A DNA stretch of 64,000 nt from Macrostomum lignano (taxonomy: Eukaryota), in assembly GCA_002269645.1 (NCBI GenBank), contig NIVC01001357.1, positions 62,001 to 126,000 on the forward strand. Direction: 5' to 3'. Below are positions 9,241-63,958 of this stretch, piece by piece. Both the position numbers and the translations under genes were made by a program. The notes under the pieces are model-generated. The model did not search any database and was not told the DNA's origin. It was given only the letters and a program-made list of their open reading frames with translations. Each line of letters begins with the position of its first letter. Position 1 is the stretch's first letter.

Positions 9241-10019
9241 TCCGTCGCCCCCGCTTCACTGCCCGCCCCAACCGATTGAATGAGAAGAGACGAGCACCGC
9301 AAGCGCGAATTTCGAATCAGATGATGCCGGAAGCGACAAAGCAACTGGATTGCAAATTTGCCAATTGGCATGAAAAATGTGGCGAAGTGAGAATTTGTTT
9401 AAATCGGGCATATTTATATATTTAAATATATTAACTTATTATGAATTGAAAGAAGCGATTCAAAGACTCTGAGGACTGCTATTAAGCGATTCGATCTGCA
9501 ACAGTTATAACAAAATATTTACAAACTAGTTTTTTTAAAAAGCAAAATGGCCAACCAATGCAATCGCAATTTCAATTAGTCTGCTTTTGTCAATTCTGTT
9601 TTGGAAGAGGAAGTTAATAAATAAATTATTAAATTAGCAAAGCACGGGACAGAGACAATTGACTCTGCTGTTATTAGTAATTTTGCTCTGTCTGACAAGG
9701 CGTAATGGAAAGCACATTAACCGCGTGTTTAAACACCAAGGTCTAAAATTTGCAAAAGCAGAAGGCAATAAGCAGTTAGCAACATTGAAGGGCGGGGGAT
9801 ATTAGAAGAAAAAAATTGGAAAACCCAACAAAACGTGAACAGATTGGGACAGGCAATGGCAACAGCAATTAGGAAGTCAGTACATTTATTTCCGGCAATT
9901 AAAGCAGCAAAATGGAACTGATTGACGAGACTATTGCACAGAGGCAGCAAATGGGACTGAGTGGATGTAGGAACACATCGGAATAGAAAGAATTGTATCA
10001 GATAGAATTATATTTTTCG

Positions 10020-31303: not shown

Positions 31304-33944
31304 TTAACCCCGCCAACACTGATGGCACGCCAGGCGTGCCATGGGTCTCATTTAACCATACACTGATATATTCCTGCACGGTCACGAGTGCGGGAATGAC
31401 ATCTGCACGAGTGCGCGCTAGCGCACGAGTGCACGATGTCCTTCACGCACGAGTGAACGTGAAGGAATTCCATTGTCGGATGATTCATCGTGCAGGAATG
31501 CACAAAACCGTGCAGGAATGCATTTCTGCGCCTAATGCTTTTTCAGTGAGATTTTACCATAGACATCCATTCCTGCACGCAAAAGAGTGCAAGAATGCCA
31601 TTCTTGCATGGAAAATCAGCCGACAATGAGAATACGTGTCTATGGCCCAGATGGTTTAGCATAAATATGACTTTTCGACATCCCCATAAGTCACGGATGG
31701 CATGCTGTGCGTACCATGTTATTGTTTCGCAATTTTTTAACTATATTTGACTGCAAGTACAGGATAGATATCAAAAACTTTAAAAGCGGACAACAAAAGA
31801 ACAAAAAACAATTAGGTAAACAATATTTAAAAACTCGATGAGGCATTTAGGAGGAGCGTTTTGAATTTCGTATTCTGAACGTAATTAAGTTTTGCACCGT
31901 ACCACCAGTGCAACTACTGTGCTGCTGCAGTGTGCCAATTCTGAAAGCATGGGACAGCACACAGCCCGGGCTCTCCTGGGCAACCAGCGCATACGAACAC
32001 CGTTCTTTTGGCCACACCATTGCTGTAGCAGACTCTGCATCGCTTTGTCGGCCTTGCATTGCCATCTGTCGGCGGCAGCTTTGATGGCGCATGCTATGAG
32101 ACAGCCCTGCGCTTCGATGTATTCAAACGTTTGCCCTGGCCTGTCTGCTCCATGAGAGTGCGGATCGCAGCTTCCAAAAATTCAACGAATTTGATTTTCC
32201 TTCCTCTTTGGCAGTTGCAGATCCAGGCATTGCGGACCAACTGCAGCAAAATGTGGAACCCGAGCTTCTGGTGCCATCTGTATGTTCTTCTCCCCGCACT
32301 GTAAGGCGCTGCAGTGCTGCATCAAGGCAATCAATGCCTCCCATGTACTTATTGTACCGCAGCACCGAATTCGGCTTTAAAGCTGACTCCTCCGCTCCGC
32401 CTCGGATCACTCGCCTCACTTCTGTGCTTTCAGCAACACCGTGCGTGTTCAACAAGTACACAGTTTTGCGACCGCTTGCCTTCCTGTCTACAAGCCTGAC
32501 TGTGAGAACATCGCCGCGGCGCATCTGGGAGTGACTGACGGGTTGCAGGGGCAGCACTTTCAGCTCATTCGGCACACCTCGATTGGGGCTCACCGTCCCA
32601 GTCAGTAAACTACTGCGTTCCAGCAGAAACTGCGCCAGACGGAGCGATGTGAACCAGCTGTCACAGAAGACCTTGTGCCCCAGGTCCAGCAAATTTTTAC
32701 TCAATTCAACGACGATCTTCTCGCTCATCGACAAATTCCCGCAGTTTAATCCATCTCCAAACTTGTCGTTATCCTGCTTAACAGCATGTACATGAAAGTT
32801 CCACAGAAAACCTGTCGAAACTTCCGTCAAGCAGTAGACCTTGATGCCGAATCTGTCACGCTTGTTGGGCATGAACTGCCGGAAAATGAGCCTGCTCTTG
32901 TACATGACCAGTTTCTTCATCGACAGACACCTCTTGACTTGGGCTGTAATTTGCTTGGCAAATATCGCGGGCAATGTTAAGAAAAGGTTGAATCTTTTTC
33001 AAGGAGTCCTGGTGGTTGACCGTGGTGCAGTCGTAAAATCGAAGGAATGATAATATCTGCACAAACCGATCCCTTCCAAGGCAATGTTCTTTCTGGAAGT
33101 ATTCGCCGCCGTAGAAGTCTCCCGTGGACCAGTACATGTGCATTTCGGGCTTCTTCACAAGACACATGTACAGAACGATTGCTAGAGACTTCTTCACCTC
33201 ATTGTCGGTACACGGTCTCCAAGTTGATAGCAAATTGGGAAGAGCTCCGTCCTGATCTTCAGCTGTCAAATGTTGAAGCTCCATGTCAGCTCGGGCGTTG
33301 GTCCAGATGCGAATGGCAGACACCAGATCAGCGGTGAGAAAGTGCTGCAGATAGAATTGCACCTGGCCCATTTTACCCTCAGGAGCTTTGCTTGGATGTC
33401 TGGGTTCAGGCCAGGCACAGCGAGGAATTCGGGCAGATCGTTGAGACGCAAATCTTCACCATCTTGAGCAGCTGTCCATTCATCCTCGTTAGCGAACTCG
33501 ACTCCATGCTCAGCTACTTCCGCATTATTCTCACCATCTTCCTCGTCCAGCAACTCTCCATCGACATTCGCTGTCGCTGCCATCGCTGGTGAAAACAGGG
33601 GACCTTCCATATTGCAATTGCAGCCTTGTCAATATTGTTAACCATTTTGAGTCTTGTGTAAGTTGAATTAATTATACAGTAAAGTTCGAAAAGTTTGTGG
33701 TATCAGGAAAAATTTACTGCATGATTCTGTACTGTTTTTACCATAGACAGTTTTAAAATAAACTGTAGTATCAGTCAAGCACAAATTTTAGGACAGTTGG
33801 AACTCAATAGTTAAGTAAGCCAGTCAGTAGTCTATGGGAATTTCTTGAGCCGTTAATTGACACAGTGCTCTGTGGTAGTGGGAAAGAGATTGAAGCCCCG
33901 TGGCATGCCATCCGTCAATAAGCTCAGTGCGCTACTGGTTTTAA
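31304..33944 (-). mobile_element. piggyBac-family DNA transposon, decayed copy (~2.6 kb)
   Basis: The left end is TTAA|CCCCGCCAACACTG followed by the palindrome ATGGCACGCC-A-GGCGTGCCAT. The putative right end has a partial inverted match (CCCCGTGGCATGCCATC...CAGTG...|TTAA at 33941-33944). An internal DDD transposase is present, and the size fits piggyBac. The right boundary is uncertain. Confidence 0.8.
31914..33610 (-). pseudogene. piggyBac (PGBD4-like, DDE_Tnp_1_7-type) transposase pseudogene
   Basis: Consecutive ORFs give an acidic N-terminus, FLTADLVSAIRIWTNARA, VSVDE, YKSRLIFRQFMPNKRDRFGIKVY, VFCDSWFTSLRL, YNKYMGGIDCLD, RRTYRWHQKLGFHILLQLVRNAW and a Cys-rich tail (KRCRVCY...VCAGCPGEPGLCC..CFQNWH). 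Disrupted by about 4 frameshifts (near 33375, 32915, 32300, 31950) and an in-frame TAG near 32090. Confidence 0.92.
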
Positions 33945-37560: not shown

Positions 37561-38588
37561 ATCAACGCCCACAAGCGGCGAGATTATCAGTCAGGCCTAG
37601 AGCATAGACTAACCCCAAATCCATTCAGGAAAAGCGCGCAGGCACATCAAAGAAACCAGCATAAACAAATGAGGAAGCCAAATAAACCGCAGACATTTGT
37701 TACCCTAAGAGACTAAGAACATAACAGAATCGGCTATTCGGGCGAACCGTTCGACTGCAGGGCTAGGCCTGGTCACGCAGTCCCAAGTCATGGGAGGGAG
37801 GACAAGCAAGCGGGGGGCTATATGTTCTGGCCCCACCTCCCGCACACTACACTAGAGTATGCAACTCAAAAAGTAACTCGACTTGCTATTTAAGAAAGCC
37901 ATCAGAAAGCTGAAAGAAACGATATCGCTTTTTTTCCTCGATTAGAAGACATTGAAGCTTATATAAACGTCAGTCGTCAAACGAGGCGAACTTATGTGCA
38001 GCATGTGCTCAAACAAGCTCAAGGCCTAAGTGTACATGCACTTCTATTTTATAATGAACTAACGATGATGGACACTGAAATGTTAGCATACTATAGGCTG
38101 GAACAATAGCGACACATATTAGAAAATAGAGACAGAATACCCAGACCTAACCAAAGCTACATGCGTGTATTACAGTGCTTGCACAGCACACATATTCTGT
38201 AAAAAGACAGTCCTCAATTCCTGTCGAGTGGCGACCAATTAGCCAAGTCTGTCTGTTGCTGCTACAACCCTATCTGGAGCACATCTCTTGCTTCAATAGT
38301 TATCATTCTTATTGTTTAGCCAAGAAGAACCACTTGGCCAAGTCTTTACTCTGTATAGCTAGCTCTCATTGAGGCGCCTATCTGTGGGGCAGAACAGCCA
38401 ATATCAATAGTGCAATGGCAATGTAGCTATAGCTTAGAAAGGCTTTTTCTAATAGTACAAATTTGTAATAGTTAAGGGTGTTTATAAAGTAATAGCTGGG
38501 TTCGCATCATGCATTGCAAATACACTCAGCAACATGCTAAAGTTTCCACCCAGAAACTAATAGTCAACTTTTCTCAGAACTCCAAGCG

Positions 38589-40780
38589 ATGCAATTCACA
38601 CACATCTATGGTTCTCATCTATGGATATGTATTTTGAATCACAAGGCCTTAGATTTAGGCTAAGAGAGTGGAAACTGATGACTAAATTTGGATTAAAGCT
38701 ATCACTTGTTGACCACTAGCACTTTGTTGCATACATTGCTTAATAGTCCTTATCCAAGTTATACCAATAAACACACTTATTCAACCCTTGGGCTAGCTAT
38801 AGACTATAGAAATATATTTATTCTTCCTTTGGGCCAGGCCATAGACTATAGAAATGTATTTATTCTTTACCAGGCTTGGCCATAGACTAAAAAAACAGTT
38901 AATCCTATTTAGGTCAAGATTATAGAAATATATTTATTTTGATTTTTGTCTGCAGTCTATAGCCAGGCCAAAATAAAAAATAAATATAAATAAATAAATA
39001 CTTTTTTTCTACTTACTTTAGTAAAAAAAAACTTGCTAGTTAAAACTTAATATTTTTAGAGGAATTTTAATTAAATTTTTTGTTACACTAGAGCATAGTA
39101 ACCTATAACAAGTTTTTGTGGTTTAATTATTAGTAGTTCTAATATAGATCCTATTTTGAAACAAAGTATTTATATATTAAAAAGTCATATAGGCTTATAT
39201 TATAAAATATCTCAAAGAGCAAGATAAAACTCTTTCTTTAATATGCAAAGTTAAACTTATTCTAAACAATGAGACAATAGGCTAATAGTTAAACTTCTTA
39301 AATTTTCCAATAGCTAAATATATCATCTAGTCTATTTGCAAATATAAATTATTTCTTGTTCTATTTTTTAAATTACTGTTAAAGTTAAGCCAAATACATT
39401 ATTTTATTAAGCAGTTATATAAATACTAAAATAATATACTGGTATTTAAAAAACAAAAAAAATATACAAAATATTTAAAAAATTATAAGACAAATTGGCT
39501 TAGATCTATGGTATACCTGTTAGGATCAAATAAAATGACTTTACATACATGTAAAATATGCTACATGCAACACTGTCAACATAGAACAAGGAATAAAAAA
39601 ACAATTTTATATTTTGCACCCTAAAAACTTATTTTTTCTTAAATTTTAGCAAATTAAAGTATTTTAATTAAGGTACTTCTTTTCTAATTGTCTTTTCTCA
39701 TTGCACATTGCAAAAGTGCATAGTTTTAAGTTTGTTACTTTGTATGAATAATAAATTCAAGAATAAAAAAGTGTATAACTTTGGTATACAAAGTTGAAAA
39801 CATTTTTAATATTGGTATACAAATATAGTCTTGTACTTTTTCCCTTTTTAGACCCAGCATACACTAATACACAATCCAAACTATAGGCTAAGATTAGGAC
39901 TAGGTCTTATAATATAAAGTATATAATATAGTCTATAGAGTTTTATTATATTATTTAGCCTAAGTTAGGCTATTCTTATTTTCAATATACATTAATAGAA
40001 TCTACAAACATAATAATAAAAATCTTTAAAATTGGTTATCTTGGATAAAAAAATGGATGAAAAGATGAAAAATTAGGATGATACAAATATTTTTTATTCA
40101 AAAATATTTTTACTTATTTTACAATAGCTAATTAATATTTAACTAACATTTCCTAGTCATTTTGTTGTCATTCTGTTATTTTCTATTTTAGTATTTTGTC
40201 ATTTGGGTGTCTATTACTTTATTCAAACTGAATTGCCAGACTTTGGAAGGTTATATAGAAAACTAGAAAAATTCAGGCATACAAATGATCCCTTTCAAAG
40301 TTGATATATAAATTTAGGCACATAGGCATAAAAATTTATGCATTTTTTAGAGTACCAATTTCAGCATACAAATTCATGCCAATTTTTTGCATATAAATTT
40401 TGGTGAATAAATTCATGCCATGCATCAAAATAGTAATGTAAATTAATGTTGTCATATAAAATAAAAGAAAATTTGTATCGTCTTTTGTCTAGAAAACTAG
40501 TAATAAATTCTTTGCTTCTTTAAAATCAAAAATAAATTAAATTAGTGAAAATTATTGCTAAAAACATAAATTTTGTGTCATTATTTTTAGAGATGTATTT
40601 TTTTTTAAATAAAAATTTTTGTAATATTTAAAAAAGATGTTTTGTACAAAAGCCTCTCTTAGAAAACTCAACTTGTGAAAACTGAATGAACTTTTTTAGT
40701 AGAAACTTTGGGATAAATTTTAAGGAATTTTTTTCTTTCTTGGCATACACTGGCCTACATTAAGCTAAGATAGGATTCTT
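38589..40780. other. AT-rich, CpG-depleted block (roughly 10-25% GC per 60-nt line), probably a decayed repeat
   Basis: No CG dinucleotide found by eye between 38589 and 40478; no recognisable ORF. Confidence 0.7.
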
Positions 40781-42328
40781 GTTCTGGCGTATACTACGAC
40801 ACAATCTGGACCCTGGTTGAATTGCTAATTGTGTCAATTCCAAATGAATTAATATGGAAATGATGTGTATAAAGTATGAATTGCTTCAATTTTTATATGA
40901 ATTTTAATGTTAAAAAGATGTGTCCTAAATTTTTGGCGATTTCTCTTCACTTGTGATTGAGGACAAAGAAGTGTCCAAATTTCCAGGAGTTTTGTGTGTA
41001 GTGCACTGATTATTCACTATAGGCCCTACAAAAAATATAGTGAATCACTATACAAAGCATTGTCATCCATTACCATTTTACCGATTGATGACAAAGTATT
41101 ATGAGTATTCAGCTAGTAATATTTGATATTCGGTATCTGAAAGCTTAAATCAATTCTTCATCATATATGAAGACATGGAATATGACGATCTACTAATTTA
41201 ATTAGCAACCTAATTAACAACATACTCCATACTCGTAGTCGTACTTTATGCTTATACAATTGAAATATTGAGAAAATTACCTGTGTAATTGGCGGGATGG
41301 ATAAAATTAATCTACATAGCATGGTGGCCCTAGTCCTATTAATTGCGCCAAGCGATATGACTTTAAAAAGTCCGATAGATAGCACTCTATGTAAATATGG
41401 AATTTAACTTAGCACGCTACGCTGGTCAAACGCGCGCCATTTGTATTAAATAGGTAAATCAAAATAGAAGCTGTTTTAAAATATAGTATGCAATACAAAT
41501 TCTTGTTACAAATCATTTGGTTTATTTATTTCTGTGAAATTTTATAGACTTTTCAGTTGTAAATTCTATTATTTATGGACGAAATGAAAAGGCAAAGGAG
41601 GTCATAAATGCATATATACGCATGTTTGTTTTATGCATGCGTAGCGTATGTTAGTATATACATTTAGTTGCTGGAAAAGAAGCAAATTTTCTTTTTGAGT
41701 AGCGAAAGTAATAATTATCATGCGTTCCTACTAGGCTCTTTAACCCCACTTAGCACCGCTAGGCCTTTTCATATTTAGTTCTTATTTTTAAACCTTTTCA
41801 AATTAGTCTTTAGCAAACATGTACGTGGATATAAGCTATATTCTGGACCAAACTGTAGACGTAGTCAAAGAAATCAGGGTGATGTATTTTTAGTACATGC
41901 CCATGCAGTTTTTAGGCTCAGATGGTGTAGGGGGTAGATGGAATACATGCATGTATTACAATTATAACATGAAATCATTAGCAGTCCATGTACATGTACA
42001 TGTATGAGCATAATGCAACTATATATATGGGAACGGCTCTACATTTGCATGTTTTATTTTTTGTGAAGAAGAATTCCCAAATACAAGTGACGATTTAAGT
42101 CGACGGCAAATTTCGTACTCTGCACCTGGTATACCTGTACAGTACATACATATACAATACCTGTGCCTGTATTCTGAATATCTGTACAATATTCCGACGT
42201 CGATAGACGTCCATGGCAAATACGAGTAGGCACTTTTACAATATTTTGAAGGCGGCTGACGTATAATTGTATAAACCCTTTTTTCGCAAAAGATAATGCA
42301 GTGAGATACTTTTAGCTAGCGTTGGCAT

Positions 42329-49204: not shown

Positions 49205-50135
49205 TGAAAGAAGAGAGAGAGAAAAGAGAGTAGACGGGAGAGAGGAGAGAGAGGAGAGGGGAGAGAGGAGAGGGGAGAGAGGGAAGGGGAGAGAAAAGGA
49301 GAGAGGGGAGGGTTGTGAGAGAAGAGGAGAGAGGGGAAGGGTGGGGAGAGAAGAGGAGAGAGGAGAGCGAGAGAGGAGATAGAGTAGAGGGGAGAGAGGA
49401 GAGAGGAGAGAAGGGAGGGGAGAAAAGAGGAGAGAGGGGAGAGGGGAGAGAGGGGAGAGGGGAGAGAGAGAGGGGAGAGGAAAGAGAGGGGAGAGGAGAG
49501 AGGGGGGAGAGGAGAGAGGGGAGAGGAGAGAGAGGGGAGAGGAGAGAGGGAAGGGGAGAGAAAAGGAGAGAGGGTTGTGAGAGAAGAGGAGAGAGGGGAA
49601 GGGTGGGGAGAGGAGAGAGAGAGGAGAGCGAGAGAGGAGATAGAGTAGAGGGGAGAGAGGAGAGAGGAGAGAAGGGAGGGGAGAAAAGAGGAGAGAGGGG
49701 AGGGTAGAAAGGGGAGGGTGGGGAGAGAAGAGGAGAGAGAGGAGAGGGTAGAGAGGGGAGAGGGGAGAGAGAGAGGGGAGGGGAGAGAGGAGAGGGGAGA
49801 GAGGGAAGGGGAGAGAAAAGGAGAGAGGGGAGGGTGGTGAGAGAAGAGGAGAGAGGGGAAGGGTGGGGAGAGAAGAGGAGAGAGGGGAAGGGTGGGGAGA
49901 GAAGAGGAGAGAGGGGAAGGGTGGGGAGAGGAGAGAGAGAGGAGATGGAGGAGAGAAGGGAGGGGAGAAAAGAGGAGAGAGGGGAGGGTAGAAAGGGGAG
50001 GGTGGGGAGAGAAGAGGAGAGAGAGGAGAGGGTAGAGAGGGGAGAGGGGAGAGAGAGAGGGGAGAGGGGAGAGGAGAGAGAGGGGAGAGGAGAGAGGGAG
50101 AGAGAAGAGGGAAGAGAAGAGAGAAAGACAGCTGA
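49205..50135. repeat. Polypurine (GA-rich) low-complexity tract with internal duplications
   Basis: Directly visible; explains pseudo-ORFs at 49161-50425. Confidence 0.93.

Positions 50136-50607: not shown

Positions 50608-50673
<66 letters not shown>
50608..50673. repeat. (CT)n microsatellite
   Basis: Directly visible. Confidence 0.98.
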
Positions 50674-50676
<3 letters not shown>

Positions 50677-51353
50677 CCTCTGCCATCTACAGCTTCTGTT
50701 GTAAGTAAAGATAGAGAATTGGACTTTGCATCGACGCATACGCAGCCACGGGGCAACTTCTATGGCTGCCAGAGGCACCTCATCGATCAAGTGTCGGAAC
50801 ACAGCTGGGCTGGGAGTTGGGTTGGTTTTTGTATCCTAAGCTAATCCACCCTGGTAACTAGCAGATCTCTCTACCTCTCCCCTCTCCTCTCTTGGCATTG
50901 GACCTTGCTGCCTACAATTGTCTTTGACTGATTTTTTCCTGCCCCTAAAGTATTCAAGGAGAAGCTTTGCAACTCCCAGCATAGTATGGCGCGTTTCCAG
51001 TCTCGTTAGGGGCGATTGCTGCAGGGGTCGAGAGGGCGATGGTAATGGAAAACTTTACCCCCATTGACCGTGACCCAAGAAACTGCGCACTTTATCCGCA
51101 CAATTTCCATCTTCTGCGTTCAAGGCGGAGGCCGCAAACCGTTTAACCATTTATCTTCCCACATTTTGGCAAGCACCAGATGCGCTACTCTGCCCTAGCG
51201 GTTTGACTTCGACGGCTTGCTTTCGTAAATGTGCCATTGGATGAATAATAGCTCTGATAAATTATTGCACTTGTGGCCACAATTTTTCTTTCCAGGAGCA
51301 GACATGCTGAACATTGTCTGAATAAGCGCCTCCTCTGCGTTCTGGAATGAGAA

Positions 51354-54058
51354 ATGTCCCAGCAAGGGCTGCTGTTCCTGCAATTGTTGACCGTTGCCAT
51401 ACGGTTGCTAGGGTCCGGCCGAGCCCTTATTCTATTCGACACTGAGTCATCTGATCGCCCGACTAGGGTGCTGCACTTTCTCAGCGCTCCGGCCATAGAC
51501 AGCGACTGCGACCGCGCCTCCCCGGAGGTGATCCCCATCGAGGGCTACTTCAAGCTGACCACGGCGCCGGCGCCACATGGCACCAAAAAACTTTGCCGAA
51601 CTCCTCTGGTGCCGTCTGGCGTTCGAGTTGACGACCCGCGCGGCATCAGCTTCTGGTTCATGCGACTGCGAGTCACCCGGCTGGCCGCCGGACAGAAGCT
51701 GAGCATCGCCAACACCGACTATGAGGATCGGCACTCGATGAAAGTTGGCAATGACCAGCTGATAGACCTCACTAGCGACTCGCATCGGTACCCAGTTGTG
51801 CTGTATCTCAAGTACAGGTAAGAGTATAATATATTCTAATATAGGTTATATATTATATACTCGTATTATATTACATTCTACACAATAAGAGAGCCGGATT
51901 CTCAGGACACTGAAGGAGCGGAGAGGCAGATTCTCAAGGACAGTGAAGGAGTGGAGAGGCAGATTCTCAAGGACAGTGAAGGAGCGGAGAGGCAGATTCT
52001 CAAGGACACTGAAGGAGTGGAGAGGCAGATTCTCAAGGACACTGAAGGAGTGGAGAGGCAGATTCTCAAGGACAGTGAAGGAGCGGAGAGGCAGATTCTC
52101 AAGGACACTGAAGGAGCGGAGAGGCAGATTCTCAAGGACACTGAAGGAGCGGAGAGGCAGATTCTCAAGGACAGTGAAGGAGTGGAGAGGCAGATTCTCA
52201 AGGACAGTGAAGGAGCGGAGAGGCAGATTCTCAAGGACAGTGAAGGAGCGGAGAGGCAGATTCTCAAGGACAGTGAAGGAGCGGAGAGGCAGATTCTCAA
52301 GGACAGTGAAGGAGCGGAGAGGCAGATTCTCAAGGACAGTGAAGGAGCGGAGAGGCAGATTCTCAAGGACAGTGAAGGAGCGGAGAGGCAGATTCTCAAG
52401 GACAGTGAAGGAGTGGAGAGGCAGATTCTCAAGGACAGTGAAGGAGCGGAGAGGCAGATTCTCAAGGACAGTGAAGGAGCGGAGAGGCAGATTCTCAAGG
52501 ACAGTGAAGGAGCGTAGAGGCAGATTCTCAGGCACTCTGAAGAGAGCGGCAGCCCTCTTAATTGAGTGAATTTCGCTCCCACTGTCAACGCAGAATAATT
52601 TATCGGTTTGTCACTCTGCTCGAATGCATAAAGACACGCTCGAGTCAACGTCATCAGTAATTGACTCTCATGACTTTTTCATTCCCCCGCAGATACGTCC
52701 GACTTTACTGGAGCAGCAGCGGGCCCGCCCGGCTCAACAACCCCGTCAACATCACGGCGGCCGCGTACGCCAAATACAAGGACGGCTTGAACGAGACGGT
52801 CCGGCAGGATCTCTGCAAGCGGCACGGCCACTCCTGGTGCCAGCCAAATCGGCAGGCCGCCGGCATCTGCCTGGCACCCGGCGGCTGCTCGCAACGCGAT
52901 GATTGCTTCGACTCGTTCAACGATCCCGAGAGATGCCCTGTGTTCGGGAACCTGACTGGCTGGGGCAGCAGCGGCGCCGGCGGCCTCCTGCCGTCGGGTG
53001 CGTGGGTGCTAGACCGGCTCCGCTGGCTGGCGCTCGCCGCCCTACCGCTCGCGCTTGTCGCCGCTCTGGCGCGGCTATGCGCTCAGCAACGTCGGCTGGA
53101 CATTGACGAGAACTACGACTACAAACCAGGCGACGACGGGGCCGAAGAGGCGGATGCGGCCGACAACGAAGCGGACGAAGAGGCCGACAATGATGAGAGG
53201 CCGCTGTCGGTTGCGGCAAGTGGAGGCGGGGGTGGCGGCAATGAAGCCTACTACTCCTACCCATCCTGCCCGCCAACCCCGCCGGCCCGGGCCGCCACCG
53301 TGGCCACTCTGGCTGCCTCAGCGACCGTCATTACTTCGCCATCGACGCCGCCGCCGCCACCTCCGCCCGTCAGGTTGACGCCAACCCCCAGCAGCAAGGC
53401 TAGCGATAGCGTTGACAGCGAGACCGGCGAACGAGATCGGCGCAGCAGTAGCAGCGGTAGCGGCAGTCAGCCGCCGCCACCGACGCCTCCGCCTAGAAGT
53501 CGACGACGAGGCAGCCGTCAGCTGCCGTCGCTGGACGAGGCGAGAGAGGAGAAAGAAACAGTCGTCAATATTGAGCTCGGCGACGTCTGCTTGCGTCGGA
53601 GTGTGCGGTCGCCAGCGGCGCCAGCGGCGGCGGCTGCCAGCGGCGACTACACAGAGTGGCGCAGCCGACGTGCCTCCGTGCCGTCCGCTGCCGCCTCGTC
53701 GCGGTGCAGCTACACCCGGCTGCTGAACCAGCCATCGCCGGACACCATCGAGGAGCTGCTCGAACGACCATCGGCAGCAGCAGAGTCGCCGGATCGGGTT
53801 GTGTACGCCCAGCTGGTCCTGCCGCCGCAGTCCTGCCTGCCGCGCCCGTCAGCACCGCCACGGATGAAACAGTCGGCGATGAAGACGCCTTCGTTGTTGC
53901 ATTTCAAAGCTCCGTCGGCGCCGGTGGAGCGCAGCGGACGGGAGCGGCAGGCGCAGATGGAGATGCGGGCGGTGGCGCCGAGGCCTCCACCACGAAGTCG
54001 TCGAGGCGAACTGCCGTCGGTGGTGGACCCGTACGATTTGCACTACATTGTGGTGTAG
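51354..54058 (+). CDS. Type I membrane protein: signal peptide, CUB-like domain, LDLa-like module, single TM, long Pro/Ser-rich cytoplasmic tail; join(51354..51817,52693..54058), ~609 aa
   Basis: Hydrophobic N-terminus MSQQGLLFLQLLTVAIRLLGSGRA. Donor TACAG|gtaaga (phase 2) joins acceptor cccgcag|A in frame. Six-Cys module CKRHGHSWC...GICLAPGGCSQRDDCFDSFNDPERC ends with an LDLa-type acidic signature. TM is WLALAALPLALVAALARLCA. The CUB-like assignment (2 Cys, beta-rich, ISFWFMRLRV) is by eye and weaker. Confidence 0.8.
51895..52545. repeat. 33-bp minisatellite (GAGAGGCAGATTCTCAAGGACAGTGAAGGAGCG), ~19 copies, in the intron of the CUB/LDLa gene
   Basis: Directly visible; explains pseudo-ORFs at 51846-52654. 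Confidence 0.96.
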
Positions 54059-54249
54059 CGTGGCGGCCAATTCTGTACAGCGTTCCAAACCTGATGTACG
54101 ATAGATAGTAATGTCAGTGATAGTACTATCTACTGATAGTTATCAGTAGATAGTACTGAGTCATTAGCTCACTTACATTTTTAATTAGTTGCCTTGCGAA
54201 TGCATTCTGAAATGAGATAATAACGTTTTAATTGACCTTGGAGGCAAAT

Positions 54250-55170
54250 TCTCAATCACTGTGGGAGCAGAGAGGCAGATTCTCAAGCACTGACGGGAGA
54301 GCGGAGAGGCAGATTCTCAAGCACTGACGGGAGAGCAGAGAGACAGATTCTCAATCACTGAGGGAGCAGAAAGGCAGATTCTCAATCACTGAGGGAGCAG
54401 AAAGGCAGATTCTCAATCACTGAGGGAGCAGAGAGGCAGAGTCTCAATCACTGAGGGAGCAGAAAGGCAGAGTCTCAATCACTGAGGGAGCAGAAAGGCA
54501 GATTCTCAATCACTGAGGGAGCAGAAAGGCAGAGTCTCAATCACTGAGGGAGCAGAAAGGCAGAGTCTCAATCACTGAGGGAGCAGAAAGGCAGATTCTC
54601 AATCACTGACGGAGCAGAGAGGCAGATTCTCAATCACTGACGGAGCAGAGAGGCAGATTCTCAAGCACTGACGGGAGAGCGGAGAGGCAGATTCTCAAGC
54701 ACTGACGGAGCAGAGAGGCAGATTCTCAATCACTGACGGAGCAGAGAGGCAGATTCTCAATCACTGACGGAGCAGAGAGGCAGATTCTCAAGCACTGACG
54801 GGAGAGCGGAGAGGCAGATTCTCAAGCACTGACGGAGCAGAGAGGCAGATTCTCAATCACTGACGGAGCAGAGAGGCAGATTCTCAATCACTGACGGAGC
54901 AGAGAGGCAGATTCTCAAGCACTGACGGAGCAGAGAGGCAGATTCTCAATCACTGACGGAGCAGAGAGGCAGATTCTCAATCACTGACGGAGCAGAGAGG
55001 CAGATTCTCAAGCACTGACGGAGCAGAGAGGCAGATTCTCAAGCACTGACGGGAGAGCGGAGAGGCAGATTCTCAATCACTGACGGGAGAGCGGAGAGGC
55101 AGATTCTCAAGCACTGACGGGAGAGCAGAGAGGCAGATTCTCAAGCACTGAGGGAGCGGAGAGGCAGATT
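54250..55170. repeat. 31-34-bp minisatellite (GAGAGGCAGATTCTCAATCACTGACGGAGCA), related to the 51895-52545 array
   Basis: Shares GAGAGGCAGATTCTCAA with the intronic array; same orientation. Confidence 0.95.
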
Positions 55171-55687
55171 CGCACATTCAGTGTGTGAGAGAGCAAGTTA
55201 AATATAATAATTTAGTCAAACAGATCCTTTAGAGTCTGACTTCTCTGTGTGATAAAAGCGCAGGAAAAAGCACAGTGTATTCGTTGCAGAAATATTTAGT
55301 ATTCCAGTGCGCACTAAGCACGCCGGTTTTTCTGCAGCATCAAACGATTATCTGAAAATCGATCGCTCTATCAGTTCATTTTCGAGAGATCGCAGAGCGG
55401 ATATTTACATTCGTTTCTGTAAATAAATGTGCAGTGTTAAATTTATGAACCAAACTAATTTTACTACTTTGAGTAGAAATACGAGGATTTTGCTTGAGTT
55501 TTGTTAATTCAAAGTGAATTTTATTAATATTCATTGAAGTCTGATTGCTTAGCGATGAAATTCTCGCGATCCGCGTGAGTTCGAGTGCTGGCAGCGGATC
55601 GACTGTCGCATTGACTCTTTCTCGGCACCTTCATCTGGACGAAGAAGTCTGTTGGTTTGCTTTTTACTTCTACGAGTATTGAATAAA

Positions 55688-56050
55688 TTCTTCTCTCCTC
55701 TCATCTCTCTCATTTCTTCTCTCCTCTCATCTCTCTCATTTCTTCTCTCGTCTCATCTCTCTCATTTCTTCTCTTCTCTCCTCTCCTCTCATTTCTTCTC
55801 TTCTCTCCTCTCCTCTTCTCTCATCTCTCCACTCCTCTCCTCTAATCTCTAATCTCCTCTCTCCTCTTATCTCTCTTCTCTTATCTTTCATCTCATCTCT
55901 TCTCTACTCTAATCTCTCTTCTCTTATCTTTCTCATCTTTTCTCTCATCGCATCTCTCATCTAGCCTCTCGCCTCTCCTCTCTTCTACCATCTCTCATCT
56001 TTTCTTTCTTCTCTCTCCCCATTTCCCTCTCCTCTCCTCTCCTCCCTCAT
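55688..56050. repeat. Polypyrimidine (CT-rich) tract
   Basis: Directly visible. Confidence 0.92.
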
Positions 56051-56116
56051 CTGGCCCGCAGCAATGCACTAGATTCTCTATCTGGCCCTTTAGGTAAAAA
56101 AAGTTGCCGAACCCTG
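56051..56116. mobile_element. Solo hAT-like terminal remnant (TGGCCCGC...TGGCCCTTTAGGTAAAAAAAGTTGCCGAACCCTG)
   Basis: The end reads CAGGGTTCGGCAAC on the - strand, similar to the remnant at 50152-50207; partner end not found. Confidence 0.35.
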
Positions 56117-56463
56117 CCCTACAGAAACCCATGACAGCCAATGGGAGACGGGATCTGCTCAACACTCTCCGTGCGGCTCATCAATTCTGAGCCAAGCGAA
56201 ACTCGCTCCCAAAAGTACCGGGAAGGAGAGGAAAGAGGATTAATGTCGCGGGCAAGGAGAACAGCCCCATTCCATAGTTAATCCCGGGATTAGGATTGAA
56301 AAATGGAGAAGAGAAAGAGAAGCATAATAATGCGCCCAGCGCTCGGGCCGCGGTGATTCTGTCGCAGAAGGCAAATCTTAGCTGGGAAAAATAGCGGTCA
56401 AAAGATCCAAACAAAGGAGGATTTCTAATCGAAAAAGCGGAACATCAAAGAGCCACCAGTCTG

Positions 56464-59400
56464 ATGTGCGGGAAATTTTCAATGCTGCTGCTGCTGGCGC
56501 TACCTTCGCTGCTCATCTGGCCGGGCCTGGGCGCAGCGTCGCGGGCCAAAAATCTTGGCACCGCCGCGTCCGGCCGGGCCTCGGACACCGGACACTCCGG
56601 ACTGTCCGGACCGGACGGTAACTATCCAGCTTCTCGATAATGGCGAAGACTTGGCGAGGTTGTAGCTTGGTGGTTAGAACGTCTGACTCATGACTTAAAG
56701 GTCGGGGGTTCGATTCCCGACCCACCTCAGAAAAATTTGTGTCCTTGAGCAAGATACTTAACTCTGCATTGCTTCAGTTCACCCAGCTGTAAAATGGGTG
56801 CCAGCATTAGCTGGGGTAATTGAGGGTGTGTGGCGACCCCAGCCTTCAGATGCGCCGCGCAATGGCTGCGGCTGAGCTGTCGGTTGCACATCTGGCTATT
56901 GGGGCAGCTGTAATCAATTATTATTATTATTAGTTGGCAAAAGCTCAATACATTAATGAGGAGAAAATTGCTCAAACCCGTCCCGGACACAGGTGTCACT
57001 CGGCTGACCGCTGAGTGCGCCGATCACTGCCAACGCAGGCGCTGCTCCAGTGAGCAGGCGGCCAAGGAGGCCCTGCTGTGCGGCTACGACCGAACCTCCA
57101 GGCCGGTGATCAAGGACAGCACGCAGATTCGCGTGCACATAGCTGTGGCGCTGTTCCACATACTGGACACGGTAGGCTGGGCACTGAATAAATCACAGTT
57201 GAAATGACACCAAAAACCCGAGCCATCTAGATTCTGAGAGGACCATTTTAAGCTGAAATCCTGCGTTGATTCAAGTGCAATGTTTTCTGATGTTTCAAAG
57301 GTGTTTACGGCTGCCAAATATCTTTGAGTGTTACATAATCTGTCTGATTGCAGTAGAACTTTGAGAGAGGTTTTGAATGCTTTTTCTGTTTTTGCTTGTA
57401 GTGGTTACAATTAAATGGATCATCAGGTTTTCGACCCATGGACCAGTTCAGGTAGTGCATGGACACCGACTTTGCACTCGTACTTTGTAAGGAATGTTGT
57501 TGACAACGCTGAATTTCAAGGCTATCCAGACTCCAAGAGTATTTACCAGCTCGTCACATATAAGAAATCCCACGCTGTATGCCTTTCCTGTGACGTCACC
57601 TGAAATATATCCATATTTGACAGCCAGTATGCAATCTCGCAACTGTACCAAATGTTGCCTGACCATCTGAGGCGTCTCTTGGTTGTTTGCGTACACTTTT
57701 ACGAGTTAGTTGATCCATTTTGTTGAGACAAGAACTGAGTCCTGTCTTGTTTGCTCTAGCGTCAAGAGCTAACCTTTGAGTTAATACCTGTGCAGACTCT
57801 GTGCGAGTTGTTATTTTGCCCTCGATTGAACTCGCTGCGCTGTGGGGTGTCCAGTAGTCTTCCTATTCTTCTCCCTCAATTTGTACTCGGGGTTTGAGAC
57901 AGGGGAAAGAAGTGGAGCAAAATATTATGCGTAAGCTTAGCTTAATATTGTAATGACTCAGACTAGCTATTTAGTTATATGTCGGATTTCCAACAATAAA
58001 TTCTACGATCAACATGGCCGGGTCTTATTCTGGCTGAATACTAACTGACAAGGGCGTCAAGCACTTGCCTGCCAGCTTAGCCATGCCTATGGACAGGCCC
58101 TAAAAATGGTCTAGTAATTGCATGTAGCTCCTTCACATAGGGACATTTTCCTTAATCTCTTGGGACCTGTCTCGAAATGAGGACTTGGATTAATTTTCTC
58201 AGCTCAGCTCAGGGTCTGAGCGGAGAGAACTCCAACCCCCCCCCCCCCTGTAAGCAGCACAGGTACGCCACCTGGACTTGAATGCTTAAGAATCCATGAG
58301 CATCTGAAAGTGACTGTTTTCGATAACTGCATTGCAGGACGAGAAGCACCAAACCTTTTCTGCTTTGATGTCAATCCGGCTGGTGAGTGCTTCACGGTTT
58401 CCCTGGCCTTTTTTAGGCTGTGAATTCTTCTATAATCTGTCTGAGCATACTATGAAGCAAACTATTTAAGTCTAACGTTTAATTTCGTTGAGTAGACTAT
58501 GATGCAGCGTGTAGACGAGAGAAAAATGGCCTACTACTCATTGCTCATAGTCGCTCCAGTCGCATCCAGCGCTCCTGTCGCCTCACAGTCATAGTTCCAT
58601 ACAGACTAATTGCCTTCGCTTACAGGCGCAGTTCCGGCTCGCCATTAACTGACTGGCAGCTTCAAAAATAAGCAGATGACAGAAAATGCTGACATTGCTT
58701 TCAGTTAGCAACGGCGGATCTATAGCTGTTATAACTGGGCGGACTGGGTTAGCGAGAGATAAACTGACATTGTCACGGTCACGCTCAGATAGCTGGGAAA
58801 CTGGGACACTGGGACACTGAGACACTGGGACACTGGAACACTGAGACACTGGGACACTGGGACACTGGGACACTGGGACACTGGGACACTGAGACACTGA
58901 GACACTGAGACACTGGGACACTGGGACACTGGGACACTGAGACACTGGGACACTGGGACACTGGGACACTGAGACACTGAGACACTGGGACACTGAGACA
59001 CTGAGACACTGAGACACTGGGACACTGGGACACTGAGACACTGGGACACTGGGACACTGAGACACTGAGACACTGGGACACTGGGACTGGGACACTGGGA
59101 CACTGAGACACTGAGACACTGGGACACTGGGACACTGGGACACTGAGACACTGAGACACTGAGACACTGGGACACTGGGACTGGGACACTGGGACACTGA
59201 GACACTGAGACACTGGGAAAATTCTCCCCACTTGAGGTGCATCTAATCTTGCTGCATTAGATCCGCTTTCTTTGTCGCTTTCCGTTCCCTTTTTGACACA
59301 AAGCTCCCTTCTAAAAAACCTTCAAGCGCTGGACAGACGAATACCTGACCTGGGATCCGGAGGACTTCAACGGCACCACAAATTTGCATATCCCATCCAG

Positions 59401-62400
59401 TGCGATCTGGACTCCGGACATCGTTATCTCTAATAGGTGAGCCAAGCATTTTCATCAAATTGAATTTCGCTGATATTGCAGAGCAAAAAAGTTGCCGCAA
59501 ACATTTCTTTGATGTCAATTTAATTGGCGTGCGCTCTGATAAGTACTATTCACCCCCACGTAATTGCACTTACCGGCTCCGATAGACTTCAGCTGGGCTA
59601 TTAGTATAGAGCTAAAATGTTTCATGTTTTATTGCTTTCACGGTCCAAATTGATGCCAATTTTAAAGTTGAAGAAATTGCACGAAAATTGGTCGGGAGGT
59701 TGTTGGGCGATTCACCCATGTGAGTGCCAACCCCCGAGGCACAGAGAGTGTACATGCCTGACGATTGGAGAGTCAGGGCCGCTGTACACCCTGTGTTCCT
59801 GCCGTACTTATCCACTGTCGCCTTGACAAGGACCTAGTGGTTCTAAGTGGTCATTCTGTTGGCTACAGATACTATTTGAAAAGCTATTTACATACTGGGA
59901 CAGTGTCTGTCATATTTGGCCTCAAGGCACTTATTAAACTCCGTACAGTCCTCGGTGCCCCGGCAACTGACGCATCGCACGAGTTGATAAGATCAGCTGG
60001 GGCGAGGCAGCCCTGCAGTCTCAGCAAATCAATATTCGAATGTCAAGCTTCTCAAAAATTTCAGAGCAGCCGTCCGAATACGACTTTGATGTCATCCACA
60101 ATCGATACGTCATCCATGTCTTTATATGATATGAACTGCGCACTCTATAACTTGGCCATTGGATCGTTGCAAACCTCATTAGGGCCGAGTTATTCTTATA
60201 ATTATGCCCTGCAGCCCTTCATCATATTTTGTACAGCATGCCGGTCAGGACGATGCCTGTCCTCCAACAAGACACATCTTGACTTAACTGGCACTAAACC
60301 TCAGAAAAAACTGAACAATATTCTTTTTGAAGCACACAAAGCTGACTTTTAACACCAACTAATGGTCCGTACTAATGCATGGAGTTCTAAAAATAGCAGG
60401 AGCTGCTGAAGTTCACTGGATCCTTGACCTCGCAGAAGTCTATAGACAAAAGCCAGTTGACCAACAGTTATGCGAGGCCTAAAGTTATATGGAACCTTGA
60501 AAGAGACACCAATGATCGTGGCAGCCTTGCACGGTCCAATAAACTAAGATGGGAATCACTGGCAGATTCACATACAATGAAACAATACGTGAAAGAAATC
60601 AGCTCGTCTTGTGTCCCGATGCTATATTTAGATATCCATGGAATTTCCTTGTGACATCCCTGGACTGGAAACGAGTCGGGAAAATTCCTATGCTTTGCTA
60701 CAAACTGCGATGCCCGAAAATTCAATGAAAAGAATGATTTCAATAATGCGTTTCAAGTGAATGCTAAAACCCAATTGCTGGGAGTCGCAGAACAATGACA
60801 GGATACAAAACTGCGGGTAGACAGAGCAGGTTTCAAAAAAGTACATAAAAGACTCGGATGAAAGCAGCTCAATAGAGACTCAGGCCCAGCTTCCTAAACA
60901 GGGTGAGTCTTTTACAATAAAGACGGAAAACGCAACGCTTTGAGTTGGGTGCAAATTGAAAAAGACGCGTTTCTTTTCAATGAAACCATTTTTTTTCTAA
61001 CTCAACCGTCCTCAACTTTTGTTTCTTTCATCTTGGTAGATAGCGTAGCTTTCTCAGCATCCGCGAAGCGATTTTTGAAGCGTGAACTCCGCCACTTAAT
61101 GAAAAGCGAAAAGAAAAAAACCATTACTGCACTTTGTATTGCTGCTGATACAGCTATTTGAATCGGCTTGCCATGTCTCTGGGGGGGGGATTGCGAGGAG
61201 AACATTTTTAAGTTTGAATTTTATCAGTAAGCACAGTTTTTTCGTGCTTCTGGGTTAGTCGGCAGACAGAAAACTCATTCCTTTGAATAAGCGCCACTGC
61301 CCCCAGCCCTTTGATTAAGCGCCACTGCCCCCAGCCCTTTGATTAAGCGCCACTGCCCCCAGCCCTTTGATTAAGCGCCACTGCCCCCAGCCCTTTGATT
61401 AAGCGCCACTGCCCCCAGCCCTTTGAATAAGCGCCACTGCCCCCAGCCCTTTGAATAAGCGCCACTTTCCTCAGTCCCTTAATTAAGCGCCGCTATCCCC
61501 AGTCCCTTGAATAAGCGCCACTTTCCTCAGTCTCTTAATTAAGCGCCGCTATCTCCAGTCCCTTGATTAAGCGCCACTACCCCAGGTCCCTTGATTAAGC
61601 GCCGCTATCCCCAGTCCCTTGATCAAGCGCCACTTCTCTCAGTCCCTTGATTAAGCGCCACTACTCCAGTTCTTTGATTAACGCCAGTGCCCCCAGTTCT
61701 TTGATTGAGCGCCCCTACCCCAGTCCTTTGATCAAGCGCCGCTGCCCCCAGTCCCTTGATTAAGCGCCACTTCCCTCGGTCCCTTGATTAAGCGCCGCGG
61801 CCCCCAGTCCTTTGATTAAGCGCCCCTATCCCTGCAGTCTTTTGATTAAGCGCCGCTGCCCCAGTTGTTTCCCTCTCGCCTACAAACTCACTGAGCATAT
61901 TAAAAAGTTTCATAATATTAAATTAAAAAGTAAAATAAATAATCTTACACTATAAACTCACTTCCCATGTACTTTTGAACTCCTGCAATTCTAACCATAT
62001 CCAGTCAGTCAAAGAGAAAATCCAATACAATCTGAAATCAGTCATTCAACTCGATTTACGCCAAACATATAGGCAAATTTTAATCCACTGAAACTCTCAA
62101 GTTCTCAAGTGCTCGGCCCAGGTGCAGTTTTCCCAGCAACTGAGGCGGGCATGAGTCGCATGCAGGTGACGCTGCCGATAGGCCTCAGCTAAGCCCCTAC
62201 GAGCGTATTTACAGCCTTTAAAACTCCAATGCATCATCCGAAAGCTATGGTGTGGACAGACAATTTTTCTCCCGACCAACACAATGAACTGAAATTTCCA
62301 TTATAAAGTCGGCTTGCCAGATATGACAAGAGAAAAGTCTGCTGCTCTGCGAGGCTCTAAAAATAGAGCATGAAAAGAAGCTGCAGAGCAGATGAAGAGA

Positions 62401-63958
62401 GTACAATGACTGAACGGGAAATAAGTACTTCATCTTTGTGTCCTCTCGCAATGAAATAACAATTTATGGGCAATAATAATAATCGCATCAGTATTTAATT
62501 TTAAATTAAAAGCACACAGGTTCTTATCCGTGTGCTGCCATCTGCACACAGAGCTACCCAAACGCTTAAATTATCAATAAGAGTTCCCACGTGATGCAGT
62601 CTACAAAATTAGGTAATTTTTACTATTCTTTCCCACTGATAATTTTATTTATGTAGCCAGATAACAGCCGAACCCCACCTCGAAGCTGATTGGCTGCCGA
62701 AGCCCCCAGTCTGGCTGCTGTAGCCAGATAACAGCCGAACCCCACCTCGAAGCTGATTGGCTGCCGAAGCCCAGTCTGGCTGCTGTAGCCAGATAACAGT
62801 CGAACCCCACCTCAAAGCTGATTGGTTGTTGAACTTACTGAAGCCAAATCCAACTTTAAATGTGTTTTTCCCTGACCAGACGTTCTAGATTTATCAGATA
62901 ATTAATAATCCGTTTTCCATATGATTTTACTTCTCTTTACTTTAGCGCCGACGAGAGCAGCAAAAAGTTCATGACGACAAATACAGTAGCCTGGTACAAT
63001 GGCAGCGTGCTCTGGATGTTTCCGGCCGTGGTCAAGGTCACGTGCACCCTGAATGTCCGCTATTTCCCATTCGACCGGCAGACTTGCATGATAACCTTCA
63101 TCAGCTGGACTTATCACCTGTTTGAGGTGGATGTGTGGCACGACGAATCAGTTGATGCAAATAAAAATTACTATAGGGAGAATAACCAGGTGTGCCCTTG
63201 TATGCCTTTTGCATCGTATGCGACACGATTTGCATCGTTATTTGTGTCATAGGTCAGTCTCAATTAACCGGAAGCAGGTCATCTTAATAAGCCGGAAGTA
63301 GGTTAGTCTCAATGAACCGGAAGTAGATTAGTCTCAATGAACCGGAAGTAGATTAGTCTCAATGAACCGAAAGTAGATTAGTCTCAATGAACCGGAAGTA
63401 GATTAGTCTCAATGAACCGGAAGTAGGTTAGTCTCAATGAACCGGAAGTAGGTCAGTCTCAATGAACAGGAAGCAGTTCATCTTAATAAGTCGGAAGTAG
63501 GTTAGTCTCAATGAACCGGAAGTAGATTAGTCTCAATGATCATGAGCCTCATGGGTTCATGACCCGTAGATAGTTCAAGTTTCATGACCCCGGATGTGGT
63601 TCAGCCTTTATGAAATATTTATAGTTCAGAAAATTGTACTCCTCTTTATCTCCCCCGCAGGAGTGGAACGTCTCGGCCATAAAATTTTCTAGAACGGAGG
63701 GTGTCTACGCCTGCTGCAAGGAGCCGTGGCCGGACGTTACCATAGTGATCGACATGACTCGACGCTCGTTGTTCTACGTATTTAACCTGATATTTCCCTG
63801 CCTGCTGATGTACGTGGCCAGCTTTCTTGGCTTCTTCCTGCCGATTGAAACGGGAGAAAAAGTCAACTTGGAGCTGACCATCCTGCTGGCTCTGGTGGTG
63901 TTCCTCCTCATCGTTGGGGACACACTGCCGCCAACGCCTGACGCCATTCCGCTTGTGG
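56464..63958 (+). CDS. Nicotinic acetylcholine receptor alpha-type subunit (Cys-loop channel), 3'-truncated by the window; exons 56464(or 56482)-56617, 56993-57171, 58338-58382, 59327-59436, 62946-63189, 63661-63958
   Basis: Signal peptide MLLLLALPSLLIWPGLGAA; GYDRTSRPV; the characteristic 45-nt (DEKHQTFSALMSIRL) and 110-nt (RWTDEYLTWDPEDF...WTPDIVISN) exons; Cys-loop CTLNVRYFPFDRQTC; loop B SWTY; loop C YACCKEPW with vicinal Cys; M1 (LFYVFNLIFPC) and M2 (GEKVNLELTILLALVVFLL). Splice phases are all consistent. Confidence 0.95.
56656..56840 (+). mobile_element. tRNA-derived CORE-type SINE, copy 2, in nAChR intron 1
   Basis: GGTTGTAGCTTGGTGGTTAGAACGTCTGACTCATGACTTAAAGGTCGGGGGTTCGATTCCC followed by the same CORE-like body as copy 1. 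Confidence 0.85.
58795..59217. repeat. 9-bp minisatellite of two interspersed variants (GACACTGGG / GACACTGAG), nAChR intron 3
   Basis: Directly visible; explains the VSQC pseudo-ORFs. Confidence 0.96.
59690..59805 (+). repeat. Dispersed hairpin-forming repeat, copy C, in nAChR intron 4
   Basis: GGCACAGAGAGTGTACATGCCTGACGATTGGAGAGTCAGGGCCGCTGTACACCCTGTG. Confidence 0.8.
61268..61865. repeat. 28-29-bp minisatellite (GCCACTGCCCCCAGCCCTTTGATTAAGC), ~21 copies, diverging rightwards
   Basis: Directly visible. Confidence 0.93.
62652..62830. repeat. ~66-bp tandem repeat, ~2.7 copies, each with GCTGATTGG (CCAAT box)
   Basis: Directly visible. Confidence 0.88.
63255..63540. repeat. 25-bp minisatellite (GTAGATTAGTCTCAATGAACCGGAA), nAChR intron 5
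   Basis: Directly visible. Confidence 0.92.

Follow-up and report, generated by a model that had tools for sequence, protein, structure and literature searches.

The gene pair described here lies at the downstream end of a 64,000-nucleotide stretch of flatworm DNA (contig NIVC01001357.1 of assembly GCA_002269645.1; hereafter the window). A two-exon gene for a membrane protein, referred to as gene 1, is followed on the same strand by a gene for a nicotinic acetylcholine receptor (nAChR) subunit, referred to as the receptor. With a probability that we put at roughly two in three, these are two independent neighbouring genes, one for a flatworm-restricted LDLa-like membrane protein and the other for a canonical alpha-type nAChR subunit, and their adjacency is inherited microsynteny. 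A preliminary description of the same DNA had proposed a co-regulated unit of an atypical channel and a CUB/LDLa accessory subunit, possibly an operon; adjacency is the one observation that carries this claim.

Two features of the intergenic region support the reading as independent genes. The gene models confirm that both genes are on the + strand, with the stop codon of gene 1 at 54058, the ATG of the receptor at 56464 and a gap of 2,405 bp. The repeat-adjusted distance between the two coding sequences (CDS) is 1,110 bp, compared with a peak at ~100 bp for the operons of Macrostomum lignano (PMC8629364). In addition, a CCAAT-box match is located at 56136–56144, 328 bp 5' of the receptor ATG, where ~0.06 matches are expected in a stretch of such size, and hints at a separate promoter for the receptor. 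The two genes would then be separately regulated, and we infer that they are separately transcribed, the receptor probably from its own promoter within 411 bp of unique sequence that precede its start codon. The distribution of the two families points the same way: because the relatives of gene 1 are found in flatworms only and the receptor clade is pan-spiralian, gene 1 does not appear to be a general partner of that clade.

Structure and relatives of gene 1

Gene 1 extends on the + strand from the ATG at 51354 to the TAG at 54056–54058, and encodes a product of 609 aa in two exons separated by a GT-AG intron. Exon 1 (51354–51817), read from its open reading frame (ORF) and its GT donor (ACAG/GTAAGA), contributes a signal peptide and the first ~155 aa of the ectodomain. 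The intron (51818–52692, 875 bp) consists mostly of a 33-bp minisatellite (51889–52549, 20 copies). Exon 2 (52693–54058), with a GC content of 62%, encodes the end of the N-terminal domain (N-domain), a six-Cys LDLa-like module, a transmembrane (TM) helix and the tail, and closes with the TAG. The splice junction KYR/YV is matched in the M. lignano homologues, including UniProt A0A1I8FBY0, which supports the gene model. A strong 3' splice acceptor, tttttctttccag, is found at ~51283–51295, 58 nt 5' of the ATG, and fits the trans-splice acceptor motif [T/C]TNCAG of M. lignano (PMC8629364); this could mark the end of an intron after a non-coding exon further upstream, or spliced-leader (SL) trans-splicing of gene 1 itself. 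An out-of-frame ATG is located 7 nt 5' of the start codon.

The predicted product is a type I membrane protein with a beta-rich N-domain, a degenerate LDLa-like module, a TM helix and a proline-rich tail. It starts with a hydrophobic signal-like segment and contains three N-glycosylation sequons, with the six-Cys module at residues ~196–236. The single TM helix spans residues ~264–287 according to hydropathy, and 258–292 in an AlphaFold2 (AF2) model. The tail comprises 317 aa, is rich in P, S, A and R, and displays many PxxP motifs together with three YxxPhi motifs, one of them the C-terminal YIVV. The tyrosine motifs are a conserved SYTRL, YAQL and this C-terminal YIVV, and a search of the tail for PPxY found none. 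A flatworm-restricted type I membrane glycoprotein with a disordered, cytoplasmic tail is a fair picture of what the gene would produce; judging from the motif-rich tail, its role would most likely be that of a sorting or endocytic-receptor-like protein or of a scaffold-binding surface protein. The small LDLa type I receptors LDLRAD3, LRP3, LRP10 and LRP12 likewise have proline-rich, motif-bearing tails, and the YxxPhi motifs of gene 1 fit this pattern. Unlike them, gene 1 lacks PPxY and has a single LDLa-like module and an unrelated N-domain, the similarity being limited to the ~40-aa module.

The relatives of this product are few. A Pfam search at E ≤ 1 gave no match, and a k-mer-seeded search of 5.8 billion proteins with the ectodomain returned no homologue; when seeded with the family alignment, the search returned only the homologue P0077. 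HMMER, run exhaustively over 1.84 billion cluster representatives, gave six matches. Four are flatworm proteins: two come from M. lignano (PAA69274.1 and UniProt A0A1I8FBY0, 43–46% identity), and Clonorchis sinensis and Schistosoma turkestanicum contribute one each. The other two are a Logan contig and a spurious repeat protein. Homology with A0A1I8FBY0 spans residues 94–609 and takes in islands of the tail as well as the very C-terminus; the paralogue PAA69274.1 is truncated. Invariant in the family alignments are six Cys, a Trp that precedes Cys2 and a DxCFD motif; an LPW-type motif lies on the N-terminal side of the TM helix, and the Cys framework is unchanged from Macrostomum to Schistosoma. 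Detectable relatives of gene 1 thus appear only in flatworms, where they constitute what we regard as a newly defined, uncharacterised family whose N-domain corresponds to no Pfam family.

The LDLa and TM features named in the preliminary description fared unequally, since the six-Cys module and the TM helix are present and the LDLa assignment stays below threshold and is carried by the family as a whole. The Cys residues C196, C204, C214, C220, C226 and C236 (~40 residues) follow LDLa-type spacing and are invariant in six of six family members. The gene 1 product itself has no match to the Pfam family Ldl_recept_a (PF00057), and the homologues P0074, P0076 and P0077 match it below threshold (E = 3e-4 to 0.02), with scores of 15.7–21.2 bits versus a cut-off of 24.1. 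A search of PDB sequences with the family profile gave LDLa domain 1 of LDLRAD3 as the best match (E = 0.0026), and LDLa-containing proteins account for 14 of the 18 PDB matches. Because the parasite homologues match sub-threshold and the profile matches LDLRAD3, an LDLa-like call is reasonable at the family level, and it is at this level that the call for gene 1 weakly holds. The acidic, presumably calcium-binding cage of LDLa modules (D-x-x-x-D-C-x-D-x-S-D-E) has its canonical form in the proteins of Clonorchis and Schistosoma (CDQADGCFDGGSDE), and the window protein keeps only part of it (CSQRDDCFDSFNDPE). The module is degenerate in the Macrostomum branch.

The CUB identity that had been proposed for gene 1 did not survive sequence comparison, failing in Pfam, in the PDB profile search and in hhalign, and was rejected. 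Gene 1 has no match to CUB (PF00431) at E ≤ 1 and five homologues have none at E ≤ 0.1; the isolated N-domains of three family members have none even at E ≤ 10. Nor did a search of all PDB sequences with the family profile (E ≤ 10) return any chain named as a CUB protein. When the N-domain profile was compared with five CUB domains by hhalign, 9 columns aligned and the probability was 0.4%; the reference domains were verified with Pfam (E = 4e-15 to 7e-38), and the family profiles in the CUB tests were shallow, with 5–6 sequences. Two AF2 models of gene 1 show a beta-sandwich at low confidence (mean pLDDT, the predicted local distance difference test, 49.5 and 54.2). Foldseek searches of the PDB with these two low-confidence models returned nothing at E ≤ 1e-3; the best matches were generic jelly rolls at E values of at least 0.009, with the CUB protein MAp19 in sixth place (E = 0.048). 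Four Cys are present in the N-domain of the Clonorchis and Schistosoma homologues; the last two of these are missing from the window protein and from its M. lignano relatives. We take the four-Cys spacing of the parasite N-domains to be CUB-like, as a lead only.

Because the CUB identity was tested and not found, the analogy with NETO and LEV-10 loses its main support. NETO1 and NETO2 of vertebrates, Neto of Drosophila and SOL-2 of Caenorhabditis elegans are auxiliary subunits of ionotropic glutamate receptors with a CUB-CUB-LDLa-TM organization (PMC9083331, PMC2652390). Gene 1 resembles them in its type I topology, an LDLa-type module beside the membrane, one TM helix and a cytoplasmic tail that ends in a short linear motif. 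It departs from their plan in carrying one N-domain, of ~165 aa and with no CUB signal, and in the degeneration of its LDLa-like module in the Macrostomum branch. The partners of NETO and SOL-2 are glutamate receptors, not nAChRs, and the exhaustive search gave no orthology with gene 1. LEV-10 of C. elegans, an LDLa membrane protein with five CUB domains and one LDLa, clusters levamisole-sensitive acetylcholine receptors (PMC9304021). Gene 1 is likewise a membrane protein with an LDLa-like module, and LEV-10 works with a nicotinic receptor; however, size and domain count are wholly different, and the exhaustive search found no sequence similarity between the two. To our knowledge, lev-10 is not located next to the receptor subunit genes that it serves.

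The receptor gene

The receptor had been called divergent and atypical, a description at odds with its alignments. The predicted product is 62% identical to an "alpha-10-like" subunit of the nemertean Tubulanus over 278 residues, with a single one-residue gap, and 58–62% identical to the spiralian "alpha-9/alpha-10-like" subunits of Tubulanus, Lineus, Owenia and Lingula. Among solved structures, human alpha7 matches best (E = 1.9e-64), in an alignment whose small gaps fall in one loop. Given the spiralian identity and the human alpha7 match, the receptor is well conserved. Pfam identifies Neur_chan_LBD (PF02931) at 4.7e-53 and the start of Neur_chan_memb (PF02932) at 1.1e-12. The receptor has the 15-residue Cys-loop CTLNVRYFPFDRQTC, the vicinal Cys of loop C (YACC) and the GEK ring (GEKVNLELT) before TM2, motifs that are intact in the alignment with human alpha7; the vicinal cysteines identify it as an alpha subunit. 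We assign it, from these features, to the canonical cation-selective alpha-type nAChR subunits of the pan-spiralian alpha-9/10-like clade, and no feature of its sequence appears to call for a special partner.

The receptor has only small peculiarities. It contains an extra N-terminal cluster of four Cys (C60, C64, C69 and C81), which falls within residues ~52–111, before and within helix alpha1. The cluster is unaligned in Tubulanus, the best non-flatworm relative, where the alignment starts at residue 66, and three of the four Cys are kept in the A0A1I8FBY0 segment of M. lignano. Ser residues, moreover, take the place of the loop-A Tyr (LYN to ISN) and of the loop-D Trp. The Tubulanus orthologue has the same changes, which makes them a trait of the clade, and these substitutions may affect the complementary face or the pharmacology of the receptor.

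The gene contains six GT-AG exons in the window on the + strand, is read up to 63958 and runs past the window end, giving a partial product of 343 aa. Exon 1 (56464–56617), which opens with the ATG, encodes a signal peptide. Exon 2 (56993–57171) encodes the Cys cluster and helix alpha1, and matches the A0A1I8FBY0 segment; exon 3 (58338–58382) is homology-checked. The near-gapless alignment with the Tubulanus protein supports the gene model as a whole. The loop A region is encoded by exon 4 (59327–59436), the Cys-loop and loop B by exon 5 (62946–63189), and loop C, TM1 and TM2 with the GEK ring by exon 6 (63661–63958), beyond which the gene continues. Intron 1 contains a degenerate tRNA-like sequence (56656–56729, + strand) followed by a non-tRNA tail to ~56880. 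The tRNA-like part scores 20.8 bits with the Rfam tRNA model, versus a gathering threshold of 29, and ARAGORN finds no tRNA in it; it looks like the head of a tRNA-derived short interspersed nuclear element (SINE).

The intergenic region and linkage elsewhere

Tandem repeats make up 1,295 of the 2,405 bp between the two genes (54%), in agreement with the earlier remark that the gap is mostly satellite. A 31-bp minisatellite (54241–55171, + strand, 29 copies) forms the 3' flank or the 3' untranslated region (UTR) of gene 1. It is followed on the + strand by an AATAAA hexamer at 55422–55427 and by a second copy at 55682–55687, directly 5' of a CT-rich microsatellite, or polypyrimidine tract, that was delimited by the tandem-repeat scan (55689–56052). 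The remaining 411 bp (56053–56463) constitute the unique stretch 5' of the receptor ATG and offer motif-level hints only. An in-frame stop is found there at 56392, 72 nt 5' of the ATG. The motif [T/C]TNCAG has a single exact match in this stretch, at 56119–56124; with trans-splicing at this site, five ATGs would precede the start codon in the 5' UTR. A plausible acceptor, ttctgtcgcag, ends at 56367, 97 nt 5' of the ATG and with no ATG between. The 31-bp minisatellite and the 33-bp minisatellite in the gene 1 intron are related, with the core GAGGCAGATTCTCA in the same orientation; this core has 46 matches with at most one mismatch, all in these two arrays (51889–52549 and 54241–55171) and none elsewhere in the window, compared with 0.02 expected.

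The AATAAA at 55422, the pyrimidine tract and the AG dinucleotides before the receptor start had been put forward as operon signals. The hexamer and the tract are both present, but at chance level. The + strand of the window contains 59 AATAAA hexamers, or 0.92 per kb, so that two in 2.4 kb is the chance expectation. AG dinucleotides are ubiquitous in the sequence and carry no signal. Tandem repeats amount to 44 arrays and 30.6% of the 64-kb window, several of them purine- or pyrimidine-rich; the arrays consist mostly of 15–50-bp units and measure about 0.4–1.3 kb each, an extreme minisatellite load. Arrays similar to the CT tract are also found at 8527–9243, 49212–50128 and 50609–50674. The proposed poly(A) and polypyrimidine signals are thus without statistical weight.

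Operons of M. lignano have spacers inflated by repeats (PMC8629364, Ustyantsev and Berezikov 2021). Under the published rule, the intergenic distance is counted without repeats and has to be <1 kb, and the downstream gene must have SL reads (PMC8629364). Gene 1 and the receptor resemble such operons in being same-strand neighbours with a repeat-inflated spacer and with no gene or ORF between them, and the repeat-adjusted gap between their transcripts would be ~300–560 bp under plausible UTR ends. The published operons, by comparison, have a modal spacer of ~100 bp and are backed by SL reads (PMC8629364). Searches of the window for SL RNA and tRNA genes with Rfam (gathering threshold) and ARAGORN were negative. 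The repeat-adjusted spacing is off the typical M. lignano operon distance, yet compatible with an operon all the same, and the sequence neither supports nor excludes co-transcription. In the des-2/deg-3 operon of C. elegans, two nAChR subunits are co-transcribed across a short spacer and resolved by SL trans-splicing, a precedent for functionally dependent nAChR components in one operon. In that case both genes encode channel subunits and co-transcription is demonstrated, whereas the present pair has a 2.4-kb spacer and is known from the genes alone.

A linkage of the two genes is implied in M. lignano and does not extend beyond Macrostomum in the loci examined. The M. lignano entry UniProt A0A1I8FBY0, a chimeric gene model of 1,148 aa, bears the name "F-box only protein 34". 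Its alignment with gene 1 covers residues 94–609 up to the shared C-terminus (YD..YIVV; E = 2e-46), and the gene 1 part is followed by a segment that matches the receptor exon-2 peptide (CS.EQ..KEALLC...RPV; E = 1e-7). The receptor exon is frameshifted, and ~500 aa of translated satellite repeat follow. Because this entry merges both homologues, it implies the same gene order and strand in M. lignano, as read from a merged gene model and not from inspected DNA. At the locus of the second, truncated paralogue PAA69274.1 (L002), no receptor gene was found within 10 kb, and blastn of the window against this locus gave no common repeats, which, taken with the protein identities of only 43–46%, speaks for a macrostomid-like flatworm other than M. 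lignano as the probable source of the window; a literature search on the M. lignano locus tag returned nothing. A tblastn search of the Schistosoma turkestanicum gene 1 locus found no receptor exon; the first gene called downstream of the homologue there encodes an Arf-like GTPase and is on the opposite strand. The Clonorchis homologue has no neighbour within 10 kb. The Tubulanus receptor locus, searched by tblastn with its 10-kb flanks, contains no gene 1 relative, and the 10 kb upstream of the Lingula and Owenia receptor loci contain no called gene with a CUB or LDLa match in Pfam. The linkage therefore appears only within Macrostomum-type genomes. Microsynteny in Macrostomum already serves for orthologue calling (PMC10468722), and within a genus it is the default expectation.

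Elsewhere in the window, an ORF at 32123–32974 (− strand) with a piggyBac-type transposase domain (DDE_Tnp_1_7, E = 6.9e-25) is probably a transposon remnant. A 490-aa ORF at 3260–4732 (− strand), with an ATG start and C2H2 zinc fingers near the C-terminus, is probably a single-exon zinc-finger gene. The region 38001–42000 is an AT-rich block with a GC content of 29%, versus ~46% elsewhere, and no ORF of at least 120 aa.

Alternative explanations for the gene pair

Several observations weigh against two independent genes. Judging from the merged model A0A1I8FBY0, the M. lignano orthologues keep this order and strand, and the linkage has then outlasted substantial protein divergence, with gene 1 at 43–46% identity. 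The gap between transcripts may be as short as ~300–560 bp after repeat adjustment, under the 1-kb cut-off for M. lignano operons, and a plausible 3' acceptor lies 97 nt 5' of the receptor ATG with no upstream ATG between. Separate transcription is, for its part, an inferred step. A first alternative is an SL-resolved operon whose two genes have no functional relationship, an arrangement that we consider unlikely but realistic, similar to the ~15% of M. lignano genes that are assigned to operons. Polyadenylation after 55422 or 55682 and SL trans-splicing near 56119 or 56367, where candidate acceptors are located, would then free the downstream mRNA. The genes share a strand with no ORF between them, the published rule removes the repeats that inflate M. 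lignano spacers before the <1 kb cut-off is applied (PMC8629364), the adjusted spacing, at 1,110 bp between the two CDS, plausibly shrinks to 300–560 bp between transcripts, and a gene predictor fused both M. lignano orthologues. Yet this spacing is far over the ~100-bp mode, use of the sole exact [T/C]TNCAG match would put five ATGs into the 5' UTR, and a promoter of the receptor's own is hinted at by the CCAAT-box match. In M. lignano, conserved genes and neoblast genes are over-represented among those with SL trans-splicing (PMC8629364); for a neuronal receptor, this makes such splicing only slightly less likely.

It is improbable that gene 1 is, by analogy with NETO and LEV-10, a partner that clusters, traffics or gates the receptor, with a linkage selected for co-regulation. 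Such a role would agree with linkage kept between two diverged Macrostomum-type genomes, and the LDLa-like module, TM helix and conserved C-terminal motif correspond to the general plan of auxiliary proteins (PMC9083331, PMC9304021); speculatively, the receptor Cys cluster, with three of four Cys kept in M. lignano, could be a docking surface. Against it, no sequence test gave a CUB signal, the low-confidence fold models match only generic jelly-roll folds, and linkage is missing at the second M. lignano paralogue and in Schistosoma. Receptor orthologues also occur in phyla with no detected gene 1 relative, and within-genus microsynteny is expected by default. The most elaborate proposal, in which gene 1 founds a flatworm family of NETO/LEV-10-like accessory proteins that in macrostomids is co-transcribed with the receptor and dedicated to it, with the Cys cluster as docking site, is a long shot. 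That gene 1 is a non-functional, decaying or mis-modelled GC-rich ORF is barely credible: the 62% GC of exon 2 favours long chance ORFs, the product has no Pfam match and one M. lignano paralogue is truncated, but homology extends over residues 94–609 with the tail islands and the exact C-terminus, the Cys framework is invariant from Macrostomum to Schistosoma, and the signal peptide, TM helix and splice sites are intact.

Nothing found lifts the accessory idea above a low-probability hypothesis. If true, it would provide a genetically tractable case of linked receptor and auxiliary genes, as M. lignano has RNA interference and transgenesis, and would reveal a flatworm-specific component of cholinergic signalling, a pathway already hit by anthelmintics; with co-transcription, the pair would represent a genomically hard-wired unit of a channel and its auxiliary subunit. 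As it stands, there is nothing out of the ordinary about gene 1 and the receptor as neighbours. A useful gain on the side is the gene 1 family itself, conserved from the free-living Macrostomum to the parasites Clonorchis and Schistosoma, which combines a beta-rich domain, an LDLa-like module, a TM helix and a long tail, and is so far found in flatworms only.

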